A stretch of DNA of 64,000 nt. Source: Pavona decussata (taxonomy: Eukaryota). Of this stretch, positions 12,051 to 50,402 are shown piece by piece. The stretch covers positions 248,001 through 312,000 of the forward strand of contig CDRNST010000263.1 in NCBI GenBank assembly GCA_977016875.1, in the 5' to 3' direction. A program made the translations under genes and the position numbers. The notes beneath the pieces are model-generated. The model did no database searches. It saw only the letters and a program-made list of their open reading frames with translations, and was not told the origin of the DNA. The stretch's first letter is position 1. Each line of letters opens with the position of its first letter.

Positions 12051-12229
12051 TTCCCTGAAAAACGTATGTTCACCGGCAAATTCTTAGAACTCCAATGTGA
12101 CAAGTTGCCATTGGTTTTGATTGATGCACAATCCACAACATTCGATAGTTATTGGCCGTTATTCTTAGGCTGATGAATTCTCAGAAACAGCGGACAAGGT
12201 ATTTACCTCTTCCGGTTAATTTCCAAGAA
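12051..12229. promoter_or_regulatory. Cluster of four STAT-type GAS palindromes (TTCN3GAA) at the putative ZNFX1 promoter
   Basis: TTCCCTGAA 12051-12059, TTCTTAGAA 12081-12089, TTCTCAGAA 12178-12186, TTCCAAGAA 12221-12229, plus near-match TTTATGGAA at 11996. Confidence 0.65.
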
Positions 12230-13144
12230 AACTACCTCTTACAGCAGACCTAACGTTAATAAGCTGAATGTGTGTCATACTCTAATTGTATGACTTCGGA
12301 TTTCAGTGAAGCTCATGAAAAGACAGGCCCGGGCCGGAAGGCTCAATAATTGAGGACAAAGTGGCTAGATGTTCCGGTCCAACTCAAGGCAAACTATCCG
12401 GCGCTAAAGAATTCATAAGTTTATTTGCTATAGGTTGATTGCATTGCCGCCATGTTGGTGCCAAAAGAAAATTTGCTCGCATATAGTTTGTGTAAAAATG
12501 GAGACGGTACAAAGGAGAAAAATATTATTGTTCCTAACCACCATTATGACCGCCATGACCTAATTTGCAATCAACCTATATATAGCCTTAGGGGTGTAAG
12601 ACGGTTCAACAAACAGGAAAAGCTTCATTTTATGCTTCACCTAACTCGGACCTCTGTTCAGATTAGTCTCTGCAGAAAGCCCCTTTGTACGAATAGGAAT
12701 AAATATTTCTGTTCACTTTGACTTCGGAGATATTCCGAACCAAGAGAACTTAAGGTACTTTGAAAAAAAAATTGCTGATCAAATCTGAGCACATCCTCGT
12801 CGGTTATAACGCCGTGATAACATTTATAAAATAACCTAGAACCAAGTCAAAAGTTGATTATGTGACTCCAGTCGCATCTTGAGATCTTATAACCTATGTT
12901 TTCAGAGTTTGAATATTTCAACCTGATTGCTTCTGATGTCGTTTCTGTACTTCTCTTTAATTATGGTCGCTAAACTCACGTACCAGACCTAGATAACTTG
13001 AGTGACTTACTAAATCTTCTGGGTGGGTCGATACCAGTTTTTTCAAATCGATCCGATACGAGTTCGAAATTTACCGATATTTGGAACTTTTTTTGGTATC
13101 GATATTGTGACGTCATTATCAAGACTTTTCAGTGATGTTATCAC

Positions 13145-13207
13145 TAGGCTCGATTTCCGCCGCTCACTCGGGCCCGGACTTTGAGTGGGCGGCGGAAATC
13201 GAGCCTA
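13145..13207. mobile_element. 63-bp hairpin mini-transposon with perfect 9-bp target-site duplication
   Basis: TGTTATCAC | TAGGCTCGATTTCCGCCGCTCACTC ... GAGTGGGCGGCGGAAATCGAGCCTA | TGTTATCAC. Confidence 0.85.
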
Positions 13208-16200
13208 TGTTATCACCTACGCTCTAAAAACATTTTTTATGGCCCGTAAACATTTCACAAAAAACACAATTAAGGTACTAGGGCCAGACTCCGAAAGCTC
13301 TCACTGTCACATGCACAAGTATCCTAACTGATTGTTCCTTAAAAAAGGCCTACTTATGGACTTACAACAGGCCATTGTTCAGAAACAATGCTTAGGAAAC
13401 ATCTCATAATAAGGAAGCTTCGTGAAGCTAGCCCCTGGCTGCTTGGAATAACAATGGGCTAGTGGAGGCAGGCAGCAAATTTTTAAAAGTATTCAAAAAT
13501 CGGAACAATCGATCATTGACTATTAATTCCATTTGACTGAACAATCCATGATTATTTTATTCTTGATCAATGTAGACTCCGAGTAATCCCTTATTTTTCC
13601 TGCGCGCGAGGGGATCTCATAATCTATGAACAATCAACTATTTATTCAACGAACCAATAGTCTCCTAGCCCTACGTATACGCAGCCGTTGTGTCGTCACG
13701 CAACGCTCCTACCCACATACAGGCGTTACGTGACGTCACAAAGAACGAACTGTCCAATCAAATCATAAATCACCGAAAAACAAAATATTTAATAGGCAAG
13801 TTGCTTGGACTTGTTTATTGCACATTCTATGAAGTCCATTATTACCAGTTTCAAGCGAGCGTTACAATACAAAGAAATGCCACGTACATTTTCCTTGCAT
13901 TAAATGCTTCATTTAATAAACTTAAAGGTTACAACTATCATTTAATTTTTCTTTTAAAGATAAGAATACATAGCCATAATCATTGGGACAGAAAGGGAAG
14001 GCTCTATGTTTCCTACATGAGCTTGTGTGGTCAAGCACTTCAGGGGTAGGGGCTAGTGAAGCCAGTCTCAAACAATTCATAAAGAGAAAACACTGCAAAA
14101 GGAGGCCTTAAATTATCATAAAATTTGGTGAACTTTTGCTTTGAATTTCTCCAAGAATTATTAATAGTTTGAGAAGCTATATCAAACACTTGATATACAC
14201 ATTTAATGTGTTTATAAATGTCATGTACACTTACTGATGAAATAATAAAGATGCTTCAGATTTTTAGGCTAATTTTCACCACACACTTGTATATTGTAAG
14301 AATGTTTCATCTCATTTCAAAATACCCTCCCCCCCCCCTCCTCAGCTGCACCTTGCTTTTTCAACCTACTTCTAAGTGTTTGGAATTCAAGTGAAACAAT
14401 CTTCCATGTGTGTGATATACTTGCTTCACTAGTTGCTGCCCAGATATGAATGGCCTTGCAGGCAATTGTCAGACAGGCTTACATTTTCCCCAACAAGACA
14501 CAATGCAACACTGCATGTAAAAAAGTCACAGTGTGTCCACATGATTTGAATAATTATTTTCAGGCATTGGCAATTGCTGGCCAAGTTATATGCAATGTTG
14601 CAATGTGTCCAGGGCTTAAAGGCACTTTTAAACCACCAATCTGACCTAATTACAAAACAAAAAAATCATTTTTTTTAACGGGAGGGGGGGGGGGGGGGGA
14701 GGAGGACTTTATAATGACAGCAGTAATGTCTCTTTGATAAATAATATTAACCCACATAGCCTCTTTGATGCAAATTAATTTACATGTAATTGCAATTAGA
14801 AAAATCGACATGGTTTGCATGATCTGTACATGTTATGCATTTGCCAGGCCAGCTGTGGTATTTTACAATGCAAAATTTATGCGCCATTATTGCATATTTT
14901 TTATAGATATATATTTATAAAAGCTCATCAAAATGTTGGAAATGAAAGTTTTCACAAAGCCACATATGAGACCAGTCTCATATGAGAATGCATGGAACAA
15001 ACGGTGTGAATCAGAAAAAATAACAGGCATTATCATCAACTATTATGTTTTTGCTGATACTCAACAAATGTGACCAGCCCCTGTTCAGGGCTGTCTGTAA
15101 ACAATGGCCTACCCAAATCACATAGAATAAAGAACAGACAAAACAAAATACAGTGGAACCTCGATTTAATGCCTTTTAAAATGAATGGAACAGAACCTCG
15201 ATAATTATAACAAACCAATATTTATTTCCCTAGTCCCGTGGCACTTCATTAAATTGAGGTTCCTTAAAAATAAAAATTAAAAAGAAAAAAAAAAAAAAAA
15301 AAAACAAGCAGAAAGAAAAGCTATGACCCTGCTGAGATTCAAATGTGGGCCTTTAGGAGTGAAATCATATTACATACCCACTTGTCTTTAACAATGTCAA
15401 AGTCTTAAAAATTAAGTACGGTCAACTCTCGTCTTGCGGATACCTCGCTATAATTATTTAGGGACACCCCGATAATACGGACAGCAGTTAAATCCCTGGC
15501 AAAAATAAATTACAGACGTTTGACTGAAATAATTCCCGCTATTACGGACTCTTGCTATTAGGACACTAACTCGTGGTCCCAAGGGTGTCTGCAATAAAGG
15601 GAGTTGACTGTATTTATAGTAACAGATGTCACTGAACATCTGGCAAACAAGAACATAAACAAGAAGTTTGCAACATAAGGCATGCTGACACAACCCAAAA
15701 ATGGAATACAACCTATAAGTATTATTAGAACTCATTCTCACTGGCATTACCATTTGTTCAATGCATTTCTGCTCCAAAGAGAACCAAACAAAGAACCAAC
15801 ATTAGCCATATTCACATTGCAATACATATGTACAGTGTACACAGGAAAATGGCAAGTCTAATCAATGAGCTGCAGAACTTAAGAGCAAACTAAGAAAGAT
15901 GAGCAGCAACTCATCAAAATACATGGCAATACTATAATGGCATGTACCTTTAAAATACCAATGGTTAAGAACTGTGTTTGGCAGAAAATATCCATACCTC
16001 CTCAAGAGAGGGTCATTGGTAAATGCACCACAGCTGTGGCCGTCTCAAAGTTAGAGTTGTTACACTCAAAAGTTAGAGTTGTTACAGGAAAGAATGGGGT
16101 CTATTGAACAGCAAAAAAGAAATTTAAGTCTAACTTCCATAAGAAGGATATGGATATTTTCTCGAACAATACATTACAGATATATTTTATTACATTACAA

Positions 16201-49257: not shown

Positions 49258-49386
49258 TTCAGAGAAGAGCAAAGAATTTGAGACAAAGCCTATTGGCTGC
49301 CTCATGATCAGTTAATAAACAGAACTTGTTTGTCAAAAGTTTCCGAGAAATCCCGGAAGAGTTTACTGACTTCCGAGAAGTCAGTA
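49258..49386. promoter_or_regulatory. GAS (STAT) motif cluster upstream of BTB copy 2
   Basis: TTCAGAGAA 49258, TTCCGAGAA 49341, ATCCCGGAA 49350 (one mismatch), TTCCGAGAA 49371. The last three are positionally homologous to the copy-1 sites. Confidence 0.7.
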
Positions 49387-49448
49387 CAATACACACCCAC
49401 CAGAAGAATGCATCTTTGATCTTCTTGTTTTGTACGTATTAAGAAAAG

Positions 49449-50402
49449 ATGTCTCAAATAATGGCCAAACAAGCTGCAGCCAAAAATCTTATTGACTTCT
49501 CTAGGCCTTGGGAATTCAGCGATGTTGTTCTTCTTGTGGAAGGAAACAGGTTTTATGTCCATCGCAGTATCCTTGGAATATGGTCGCCTGTGTTCTCACG
49601 AATGTTTACTGCAGACTTCAGAGAGAAAACCGCCAGACAAGTCCCTCTTCCAGGGAAGAAAGCAAGCGAGATAAAAGAGCTGCTGCTTGTGATTTATCCA
49701 AGTTCCTCAAAACAGATAGATGAAAACAACTGCTTGTTCCTGCTAGATCTCGCCAGAGAATACATGATGAAGAAACTCACTGAGAAATGTGAGGACTATC
49801 TGATTGACTCCCTTGAAAAGCCCGGACAGCCGCAACCCGACGTTTACTACTCTGGACCTCGACAACTAAATCCCTGGAGACGCTGTTGCCTGAACCTCCT
49901 TGAGATCGCACAGTACTATGGATTGGAGACTCTTGAAACGGCCTGCATCAACAAGGCACAAAGCGTCAGCTTCACTGACCTGAAAAATCACGATATATAC
50001 AAGAAAATCAACCTTACCAACTATCGTAGGATAGTCGAGGGAAAGATTAAAAAGATGGAACAGGAGCTGAGTGCCAGAGAAAGGGATGTGCAAGAGTTAG
50101 AGTCCGCATTCAAGAGGAAAGTAGGAGAGCTAGATGGGGCATCTCAAGAGGTCAAATCTCGTGCTTCAAATGCGGTGAAAAAGTTTGAGAATGTTGTAAC
50201 TATTCTTGAATTTTTTGTTACCAAGTCTCGTCATAGTTCATTCTACTCCTATTATTCCGATTCCACTGATGACAAATTAGAATGCATTAGTGAATCAGGT
50301 GGTTATTTGGAGAGGCTTTATAATCCTCTGTCAGAACTGTACACTGATCTGCAAGCCATTATGCGTCATGCAAATGACATGAATTCGGCAGTACAGCGTT
50401 AA
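49449..50402 (+). CDS. Intronless BTB/POZ-domain protein with coiled coil (copy 2, apparently intact)
   Basis: DFSRPWEFSDVVLLVEGNRFYVHRSILGIWSPVFSRMFTADFREK; paralogous to 46369-47265 throughout. Start may be the ATG at 49461. Confidence 0.92.
   Translation: MSQIMAKQAAAKNLIDFSRPWEFSDVVLLVEGNRFYVHRSILGIWSPVFSRMFTADFREKTARQVPLPGKKASEIKELLLVIYPSSSKQIDENNCLFLLDLAREYMMKKLTEKCEDYLIDSLEKPGQPQPDVYYSGPRQLNPWRRCCLNLLEIAQYYGLETLETACINKAQSVSFTDLKNHDIYKKINLTNYRRIVEGKIKKMEQELSARERDVQELESAFKRKVGELDGASQEVKSRASNAVKKFENVVTILEFFVTKSRHSSFYSYYSDSTDDKLECISESGGYLERLYNPLSELYTDLQAIMRHANDMNSAVQR

Follow-up and report, generated by a model that had tools for sequence, protein, structure and literature searches.

Three clusters of TTCN3GAA palindromes (GAS sites) in the window, i.e. 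the 64,000-nucleotide stretch of DNA analysed here, share a composite layout, in which two TTC-N3-GAA palindromes, mostly of the type TTCYNRGAA, surround a central ETS-type core CCGGAAG. It is located on the gene strand and within about 50-300 bp of the inferred start of transcription. On balance, we favour the view that all three clusters represent genuine cis-regulatory modules of a single type that are under constraint, and through which a coral STAT together with an ETS factor would switch on innate-immune genes. Co-regulation of ZNFX1 and a family of BTB genes by STAT had been proposed in an initial annotation of this DNA and is partly supported by the sequence comparisons described below; the central ETS-like element is new, as it was missed in the first reading. 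How the extensive antiviral programme of cnidarians is switched on in the absence of known cytokines is recognized as an open question (PMC13319465), NF-kB accounts for only part of the induction, and knock-downs of STAT and IRF were uninformative (PMC8713801). The cassette described here, which is rare and spacing-specific and occurs at ZNFX1, at a cGAS-like receptor gene and at further genes of immune type, suggests as a concrete hypothesis what the missing transcriptional link might be.

GAS sites are clustered in the window

All ten TTCN3GAA sites previously reported were recovered, each where it had been placed, and an eleventh was detected at 12302. In total, the window (GC content 37-45%) contains 30 TTCN3GAA sites as compared with 30.5 in shuffled sequences, i.e. 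their number is at chance level, and the assumed chance rate of about one site per 3 kb is to be corrected to about one per 2.1 kb. Clusters of at least three sites within 130-300 bp occurred three times, whereas 0.04-0.23 were expected from 1000 dinucleotide shuffles (P<=0.004). That matches elsewhere are isolated is nearly correct, except for loose pairs at 5183/5238, 8015/8018, 13645/13825 and 37567/37809. The sites at 12302 and 49258, which are not conserved, probably stand outside the module.

The identities assigned to the adjoining genes (ZNFX1, BTB1, BTB2) hold according to Pfam. Location of the sites just upstream of a gene start applies literally to the BTB genes, where they are found 78-117 bp before the ATG; at ZNFX1, the distance to the ATG is 3.1 kb. 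The upstream regions of ZNFX1 and the BTB genes had been regarded as not otherwise similar, which is wrong: the GAS-CCGGAAGAG-GAS composite is common to both and is oriented alike with respect to the gene at all of these loci.

The half-sites upstream of ZNFX1 are invariant among three loci

The ZNFX1 coding region (3312..8913, minus strand) is made up of two long open frames (8913-6979 and 5942-3312). Pfam detected ZNFX1 (4.4e-28), AAA_11 and AAA_12 (7.4e-41), corresponding to a ZNFX1 domain and a UPF1-like helicase core, and gave no match for NFX1-type zinc fingers in the frames tested. The promoter elements are all located on the minus strand. The distal GAS site 1 (12221..12229) reads TTCTTGGAA on the gene strand and is separated from GAS site 2 (12178..12186; TTCTGAGAA) by the ETS-like element CCGGAAGAG (12207..12215). 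GAS site 3 (12081..12089; TTCTAAGAA) and the proximal GAS site 4 (12051..12059; TTCAGGGAA) follow downstream of a CCAAT-box-like element CGGCCAATAAC (12148..12158), which we infer to be a CCAAT box. Both CCGGAAGAG and CGGCCAATAAC are invariant in the three-way alignment A2, and GAS sites 2 and 3 are the same in 3/3 orthologous loci. Since GAS site 2 lacks a GGAA core, it cannot be an ETS site. The half-sites of GAS site 1 are unchanged in the two diverged orthologous loci L040 and L041, its spacer being different in L041, while GAS site 4 reads TTCCGGGAA in the orthologues, i.e. its spacer is changed and its half-sites are kept. Changes in the GAS sites among the three loci are confined to the spacers: the half-site columns are invariant in 24/24 cases as compared with 71% of the columns of the block (permutation P ~0.009), which is ~80% identical overall between the compared loci. 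This promoter stretch is single-copy in the genome. No such GAS cluster was found within 6 kb upstream of ZNFX1 orthologues with 68-69% amino acid identity, so that deep conservation of the cluster would be hypothetical.

Conservation extends over the block 12252-11935, precisely up to a splice donor (GGAG/GTAAGT), past which it collapses, suggesting a non-coding exon 1 of ZNFX1. This putative exon would comprise 11935..12045 on the minus strand, with its 3' end at 11935, the donor GT at 11934-11933 and a putative 5' boundary. Intron 1 would accordingly span 8914..11934 (minus strand), with the acceptor tttcttag directly preceding the ATG at 8913. The ZNFX1 GAS sites are located upstream of the inferred exon.

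A subclade of BTB genes shares the module

BTB1 (46369..47265, plus strand; 298 aa; Pfam BTB 1.3e-21) and BTB2 (49449..50402, plus strand; 317 aa; Pfam BTB 3.5e-23) are intronless BTB and coiled-coil genes, which are 56% identical and belong to a family that expanded by tandem duplication in this lineage and has at least 30 intronless members. The BTB1 promoter module (46252..46292, plus strand) contains GAS sites at 46252-46260, 46261-46269 and 46284-46292, the second of which overlaps with CCGGAAGAG at 46264-46272. At BTB2 (module 49341..49379, plus strand), CCGGAAGAG at 49353-49361 is located between GAS sites at 49341-49349 and 49371-49379. Both genes additionally carry a ATCTTTGATC element on the plus strand before the ATG (46326..46335, ~40 bp upstream of the BTB1 start codon, and 49412..49421 at BTB2), which is kept across both paralogue clusters and possibly marks the start-site region.

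GAS sites at about -112 and -86 are present in 6/6 closest paralogues, located on two contigs, and in 0/24 more distant paralogues. The positions are also kept in another assembly, and the flanks of the sites have diverged. Between the BTB paralogue clusters, and in other assemblies, the only conserved islands are the GAS sites, CGGAA and ATCTKTGATC. A third BTB-like copy in the window (61240..61981, plus strand) has a reading frame broken by stops and a decayed module at ~61240-61281, in which the ETS-like CGGAAGC is retained and both GAS sites are gone. In the L007 lineage, both GAS sites were lost and the ETS-like core was retained. The BTB family carries an internal control in the form of sister paralogues that lost the STAT-type sites, and this unstudied family is nominated as a source of candidate immune effectors.

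The composite is rare in the genome and found at a cGAS-like receptor gene

The strict composite, defined as GAS-N0-8-CCGGAAGA-N5-35-GAS, was searched over 602 Mb and yielded 4 matches (ZNFX1, BTB1, BTB2 and a Mab-21/cGLR gene) versus 0 in the control. Looser composites with the core CCGGAAG matched 18 times, as compared with a single match for the reversed control and 2 when the spacing was N4, and fall into 13 flank-unrelated groups; 12/14 of those outside the window read CCGGAAGT. The pattern was defined after viewing the three promoters of the window, while the other 15 matches and all controls are independent of this choice. Across the genome, simple GAS pairs show no enrichment over the reversed control. 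The concern that GAS clusters might be genomic background or belong to a repeat family was not borne out: over 602 Mb, triple clusters were counted at 324 positions, many of which are tandem repeats, the ZNFX1 stretch has a single copy, and the flanks of the composites are unrelated. Further composites adjoin a PARP14-like ORF and another gene of the ZNFX1 family; several others are found next to genes without known immune role or next to no identified gene.

The fourth strict composite is found immediately upstream of an intronless cGAS-like receptor (cGLR) gene, whose product contains a Mab-21 nucleotidyltransferase core (2.5e-24) and a Mab-21 C-terminal domain (1.9e-12) according to Pfam, and whose relatives in Stylophora, Oculina and Montipora are named cGAS or cGLR. 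The module is kept in a 76%-identical orthologue, in which the spacer of GAS1 is changed and GAS2 is the N4-spaced TTCGGAGGAA. Just 13 bp separate its end from the start codon, which is an unusual position for a promoter element.

Candidate factors reading the sites

STAT sites prefer TTCYNRGAA, and strict N3 spacing combined with YNR bias represents the textbook STAT signature. TTCYNRGAA is matched by 8/9 conserved sites and by 5/21 other sites (Fisher P=0.0016), the cGLR sites (TTCGGAGAA) being an exception. This bias and the specificity for N3 spacing (18 matches versus 2 for N4) fit a STAT. The genome contains a STAT gene, as had been anticipated, which is represented by three collinear exon matches at C8:3,616,274-3,620,489 (Pfam STAT_alpha 77-120, STAT_bind 1-20 and 84-124), each of them weak alone. 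No ISRE-like element was seen. Immune stimulation of Nematostella co-induces STAT, ELF1/ELK1, ZNFX1 and cGAS homologues (PMC13319465).

We propose, as the most likely reading, that a coral STAT dimer would bind the palindromes and cooperate with an ETS factor at the central core. Both factors would jointly switch on an innate-immune gene set comprising ZNFX1, a six-gene SPOP-like BTB/coiled-coil subclade and the cGAS-like receptor, with the second ZNFX1-family gene and the PARP14-like gene as probable further targets. These genes are predicted to be inducible and co-induced. Cnidarians lack interferon and a canonical JAK (PMC8713801, PMC3670263), so STAT would presumably be activated without JAK. 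The STAT of Nematostella reportedly has no transactivation domain (PMC3670263). An obligatory ETS activator at a neighbouring site may account for the composite layout. More tentatively, and with somewhat less than even chances, stony corals could possess an interferon-free and JAK-free ISG-like regulon operating through a STAT-ETS-STAT cassette, which would link ZNFX1-family helicases and the cGAS-like receptor, as nucleic-acid sensors, to the PARP14-like gene and to SPOP-like, coral-specific BTB/coiled-coil proteins acting as new ubiquitin adaptors against viruses. If so, STAT-driven antiviral transcription would predate both interferon and JAK, and the cassette would provide a sequence rule for locating the whole regulon.

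Alternatively, the module is functional but its palindromes are read by a non-STAT factor together with ETS, so that the regulon need not depend on STAT. We consider this unlikely, and the same holds for the conceivable candidates, an unknown dimeric factor recognizing TTC-N3-GAA or a Rel/NFAT-type protein acting on TTTCC/GGAAA halves. Many sites indeed contain TTTCC or GGAAA, and knock-down of Nematostella STAT did not measurably reduce cGAMP-induced genes, a result for which the authors list caveats, while knock-down of NF-kB had a measurable effect (PMC8713801). However, the strict N3 specificity and YNR bias argue against such a factor, as do the absence of a GGAA or GGAAA core from the fully conserved ZNFX1 sites TTCTGAGAA and TTCTAAGAA, the presence of the STAT gene, and the strong induction of STAT in the antiviral state of Nematostella. 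Less probable still is that the module drives cell-type-specific or constitutive expression, e.g. in immune-type cells, and thus serves a lineage programme rather than an interferon-like response. ETS factors are classic lineage determinants, and basal expression of such genes is observed in immune-type cells of Nematostella and Stylophora (PMC13319465), but in Nematostella the homologues of ZNFX1, STAT and cGAS-like genes show strong induction (log2FC 2.6-5.7), and a BTB-only gene, the putative counterpart, is up 4-fold in cGAMP-treated Stylophora. Strongly disfavoured, and in our view very improbable, is that the clusters are non-functional chance matches kept by recent duplication or too little divergence: the two BTB genes are paralogues, the ZNFX1 blocks are similar overall and the site total of the window is at chance, but the sites have been retained in two paralogue clusters and in other assemblies despite diverged flanks, half-sites remain unchanged while spacers change, the composite occurs in 13 unrelated contexts versus 1-2 in controls, and the loss of GAS sites from a sister lineage indicates that they can decay.

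Comparison of the module with known STAT systems

The proposed STAT-ETS module resembles in sequence the GAS elements of interferon- and cytokine-stimulated vertebrate promoters, bound by STAT1/3/5 dimers at TTCN3GAA, with which it shares the palindrome, the N3 spacing, the TTCYNRGAA bias and the arrangement in promoter-proximal clusters with paired sites. ZNFX1 is among the predicted targets in the coral, and the mammalian gene is interferon-stimulated. Unlike vertebrate GAS promoters, the coral module has a fixed central ETS-type core and occurs in a phylum without interferon or canonical JAK. In Drosophila, likewise an invertebrate with a single STAT, conserved clusters of the same motif (TTCNNNGAA) predict STAT92E enhancers and mark direct targets (PMC2877871), and the coral search followed the same discovery logic. 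However, the Upd-Domeless-Hopscotch (JAK) pathway is complete in Drosophila, and the STAT92E enhancers studied are developmental, an obligatory ETS partner site not being described there. Neighbouring STAT and ETS sites are also found in mammalian immune genes, where STAT5 recruits Ets1 complexes (Stat5-dependent Ets1-Runx1 recruitment; PMC10106990), but a fixed GAS-ETS-GAS cassette is absent in that case, whereas in the coral the elements follow a stereotyped spacing of first 0-8 bp and then 5-35 bp.

BTB1 has an SPOP-like BTB domain and a predicted long C-terminal helix

The closest solved structure to the BTB domain of BTB1 is the SPOP BTB domain (7.4e-8), followed by KLHL3/22/26 and KEAP1, and the nearest protein-atlas clusters are named 'BTB and MATH domain-containing protein 36/38-like'. 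Structural matching to SPOP/KLHL-type adaptors is weak (E about 0.01). It is this SPOP/KLHL-like BTB domain from which a role of the BTB proteins as putative Cullin-3 adaptors, and hence a 'ubiquitin-centred module', might be predicted. The BTB domain of BTB1 is similar to those of SPOP/BTB-MATH and KLHL-type Cullin-3 adaptors, but a domain search of BTB1 and BTB2 revealed neither MATH nor Kelch nor any other known substrate domain. Instead, the BTB1 model exhibits a long C-terminal helix of ~75 residues (185-259).

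GAS palindromes cluster upstream of ZNFX1 and two BTB genes

When the window (37–45% GC) was searched for TTCNNNGAA, 30 sites were retrieved as compared to 30.5 expected from dinucleotide shuffles, and thus the motif is not enriched overall. The resulting density of STAT-type TTCN3GAA palindromes (subsequently designated GAS), about one per 2.1 kb, is higher than the one per 3 kb assumed in the initial annotation. Every site on which that annotation relied was recovered, i.e. 12051, 12081, 12178 and 12221 upstream of the antiviral helicase gene ZNFX1, 46252, 46261 and 46284 upstream of BTB1, and 49258, 49341 and 49371 upstream of BTB2, plus one extra site at 12302. 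The proposed clustering is non-random: three clusters, each comprising at least three sites within 130–300 bp, were observed, while 0.04–0.23 are expected by chance (1000 shuffles, P≤0.004). Pfam searches also confirmed the genes, namely a helicase of the ZNFX1 family (minus strand, open frames 8913–6979 and 5942–3312) and the intronless BTB1 (46369–47265) and BTB2 (49449–50402) genes on the plus strand. Between ZNFX1 and BTB1, an open frame encoding a MYND zinc finger is located at 23678–24289 on the minus strand (Pfam 4.8e-7); the remaining open frames between 12.3 and 46 kb gave no Pfam match. The possibility, raised with the initial annotation, that such clusters are common background in this genome was rejected following genome-wide searches. 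Simple GAS pairs showed no excess over the reversed control genome-wide, and therefore a pair alone is not diagnostic.

The three promoters share a composite of GAS sites and an ETS-like core

The upstream regions of ZNFX1 and the BTB genes had been regarded as otherwise dissimilar. This turned out to be wrong, as a composite is common to all three promoters: the ETS-like core CCGGAAGAG follows the distal palindrome within 2–5 bp and itself precedes a second palindrome, in identical orientation relative to the gene. In the whole genome, the pattern GAS-N0-8-CCGGAAGA-N5-35-GAS matched four times and its reversed control not once, with about 0.5 matches per genome expected by chance according to our own rough estimate. 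These matches correspond to the ZNFX1, BTB1 and BTB2 promoters plus a single site on contig C156. With a CCGGAAG core, 18 composites were found (reversed control: 1), and 12 of the 14 located beyond the window carry CCGGAAGT, which is the classical ETS core. The same core flanked by N4-spaced palindromes yielded 2 matches (reversed control: 1).

Distribution by a repeat family, a further objection anticipated in the initial annotation, or by a mobile element was not borne out. The ZNFX1 upstream stretch (11850–12450) is single-copy in the genome, and the 18 CCGGAAG-core sites can be sorted into 13 groups whose flanks are unrelated, indicating that the module is not carried by a mobile element; this origin was therefore rejected. 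A dispersed repeat family containing TTCCAAGAAGGCGGAAGGCGGGATTCGTGGAA (e.g. C19:1659398, C44:1103545 and C66:345038 in the genome assembly G000) contributes about 17 copies to the relaxed-pattern matches and inflates the loosest pattern, which has a CGGAA core; it is removed by demanding the CCGGAAG core. A second dispersed repeat family bears TTCCCAGAAATTTGGAAATTCCGGGAA. GAS-like pairs inside repeats need masking in any genome-wide regulon scan.

GAS half-sites are invariant in orthologous ZNFX1 loci

On the ZNFX1 gene strand, a splice acceptor directly precedes the ATG at 8913 and a donor (GGAG|GTAAGT) is present at 11935/11934. The gene was compared with two orthologous loci from other assemblies (L040 and L041), whose ZNFX1 proteins are 87% and 81% identical to that of the window. 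DNA identity is approximately 80–85% throughout the two loci, with 71–87% given for L040 versus window 3312–12432. The aligned upstream block corresponds to window 12252–11935 and ends exactly at the splice donor, similarity being lost beyond, as would be expected of a promoter plus a short first exon that is non-coding. All four GAS sites of the block are found in both loci. Their half-site columns are invariant (24/24) versus 71% of the block columns (permutation P ~0.009), and changes within the sites are confined to the spacers. The fifth palindrome at 12302 is not conserved in these loci. In two more distant ZNFX1 orthologues (L042 and L043; 68–69% amino acid identity), neither an alignable promoter nor a cluster within 6 kb was detectable, so that conservation of the ZNFX1 cluster is seen in the closer loci L040 and L041 only. 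Both share their contigs with BTB homologues, indicating that linkage of ZNFX1 and BTB genes is conserved.

Other contigs of the sample from which L040 derives (ena:ERZ25073751 ctg101486) bear BTB paralogues whose upstream regions match those of the present genome exactly, and a 99%-identical BTB1 (P0001) is reported for a contig of equal length (646,462 bp), which may be that of L040. L040 may represent a ZNFX1 haplotype that has diverged deeply, through balancing selection or introgression, and not another species. The ZNFX1 family is expanded in the stony coral Pavona decussata: two paralogues (49–51% identity) reside at C263:211527–232561, 16–37 kb before the window start, and further ZNFX1-like genes with open frames of up to 2669 aa are clustered at G000:C51:3.25–3.38 Mb.

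A subclade of BTB genes retains the paired palindromes

A six-frame search of the 602-Mb assembly detected at least 30 intact intronless BTB paralogues. Palindromes ~112 and ~86 bp upstream of the ATG are present in 6/6 of the closest copies, i.e. BTB1, BTB2 and four genes on contig C331 (53–58% protein identity to BTB1), and in 0/24 of the remaining copies. Alignments between the two BTB gene clusters revealed that conservation is limited to short islands consisting of TTTCCSAGAA, the CGGAA core, TTCCSAGAA and ATCTKTGATC. Among homologues from other public assemblies, one with 49% identity kept GAS, CCGGAAGAG and GAS at the same relative place, one lost the first GAS, and in a 46%-identical homologue the module was absent. 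A third BTB copy in the window (ATG near 61376) has a frame interrupted by stops; both this copy and an intact sister gene located shortly beyond the window kept the ETS-like core and lost both palindromes. Hence, GAS sites can decay, and the fact that the six-gene subclade has kept them points to constraint. An NF-kB-like reading of GAATTCCC in BTB1 was dismissed, as this sequence is not conserved in the paralogues.

The 10-mer ATCT(T/G)TGATC (window 46326–46335 and 49412–49421; also in the BTB loci L003–L006 and L034) is conserved ~40–45 bp 5’ of the ATG in all GAS-bearing BTB paralogues. Its CTTTGAT core resembles a TCF/LEF site; alternatively, the element may mark the BTB start site.

The BTB domain is nearest to that of SPOP, followed by KLHL and KEAP1, all three being Cullin-3 adaptors. 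No MATH or Kelch domain was detected in the BTB proteins, and according to the protein atlas the family is mainly cnidarian. The predicted structure of BTB1 is of moderate confidence (mean pLDDT 69): residues 1–72, including the start of the BTB domain, are poorly modelled. Also predicted are a helical extension and a confident helix of ~75 residues (185–259), which would agree with a coiled coil. With Foldseek, SPOP, KBTBD and KLHL were matched weakly (E about 0.01). By homology, the proteins can reasonably be classified as putative Cullin-3 adaptors.

Composites precede further genes, including candidate immune genes

The composite on C156 immediately precedes an intronless gene that encodes Mab-21 and Mab-21_C domains and whose relatives in scleractinian corals (Stylophora, Oculina, Montipora) are annotated as cGAS or cGAS-like receptors (cGLR). 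An orthologue from another assembly (76% identical) exhibits the same layout at the same distance from the ATG. Here, the half-sites of the first palindrome are kept with a changed spacer, ACGGAAGT occupies the centre, and the spacing of the second palindrome is N4 (TTCGGAGGAA). The C-terminus of another Mab-21-type gene precedes the composite-bearing cGLR (L044:31–291 and L044:1553–2731, respectively; G000:C156), which places the latter in a tandem cGLR array. Within this array, only the composite-bearing copy matched the strict composite.

Genes at the other composites were sought as same-strand open frames downstream. This identified a second ZNFX1-family gene (C143), a frame with weak PARP14-type KH-domain matches (C408), ankyrin-repeat proteins (C1) and Ig-domain exons (C123); for the composites on C28, C76, C129 and C275 no downstream gene was identifiable from open frames. 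In the C143 locus (L055; G000:C143:475011–483060), 1.3 kb separate the composite from a downstream open frame of 1404 aa, for which Pfam gave no match; the exon after this frame encodes a ZNFX1 domain (7.5e-27). As read from the sequence, the N-terminal region of this ZNFX1-family member is long and novel. On C28 (L050/L051; G000:C28:387219–403721), three GAS-CCGGAAGT-GAS composites occur within 5 kb in divergent orientation, and L050 contains ten TTCN3GAA sites within ~1.1 kb.

The palindromes fit STAT sites

Several properties fit an assignment of the palindromes as putative STAT sites. Composite enrichment is restricted to the N3 spacing (18 N3 versus 2 N4 matches genome-wide). Moreover, 8/9 conserved sites are of the TTCYNRGAA type as compared to 5/21 other window sites (P=0.0016; 25% expected by chance), a property that played no role in their selection in the initial annotation. 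In flies, searches based on conserved TTCNNNGAA clusters have succeeded in identifying STAT92E enhancers (PMC2877871), and STAT5-dependent recruitment of Ets1 complexes occurs in mammals (PMC10106990). Immune cells of Nematostella respond to poly(I:C) activation by up-regulating a STAT5A homologue along with homologues of ELF1 and ELK1, which are ETS factors; the supplementary tables list induction of STAT (log2FC 5.7) and of homologues of ZNFX1 (3.4) and Mab-21/cGAS (2.6) (PMC13319465). A Stylophora BTB-only gene, possibly orthologous to the BTB1/BTB2 family, is up 4-fold after cGAMP (PMC13319465).

Against STAT sites speak the missing genome-wide enrichment of simple GAS pairs and the observation that STAT knock-down in Nematostella left cGAMP-induced genes unreduced, for which its authors pointed to incomplete knock-down and protein stability as caveats (PMC8713801). 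A pure cluster of ETS sites was rejected, because two invariant ZNFX1 palindromes lack any GGAA core and cannot be ETS sites, which in turn fits STAT. Heat-shock elements require N2 spacing and were discarded.

At default thresholds, a Pfam search found no STAT in the genome. Only relaxed thresholds combined with collinearity made a candidate visible: three individually weak STAT exon matches, collinear within 4.2 kb (G000:C8:3616274–3620489, plus strand), which probably represent the STAT gene of Pavona decussata and add to the case for STAT sites.

A model for joint action of STAT and ETS factors

The sites exist, are constrained, are specific for the N3 spacing and mark the genes named here; what they do is what we infer in the following. 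Upon an immune stimulus, STAT dimers would occupy the paired palindromes and an ETS factor the central core, to jointly switch on ZNFX1, the cGLR, the GAS-bearing BTB subclade and the other module-bearing genes. STAT itself would probably be induced too. Nematostella lacks interferon and has one STAT (PMC8713801), canonical JAK is confined to bilaterians, and anemone STAT reportedly lacks a transactivation domain (PMC3670263). In the coral, a non-JAK kinase would activate STAT, and the ETS partner may provide the activation function missing from the cnidarian protein.

By analogy, the coral elements are proposed to act in the manner of GAS sites in vertebrates and STAT92E clusters in flies. 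Unlike these, they form a stereotyped ETS-centred cassette and reside in an animal without interferon and JAK. Full-text searches brought up just three papers naming both ZNFX1 and cnidarians, and a GAS-based regulon in cnidarians is described in none of those found.
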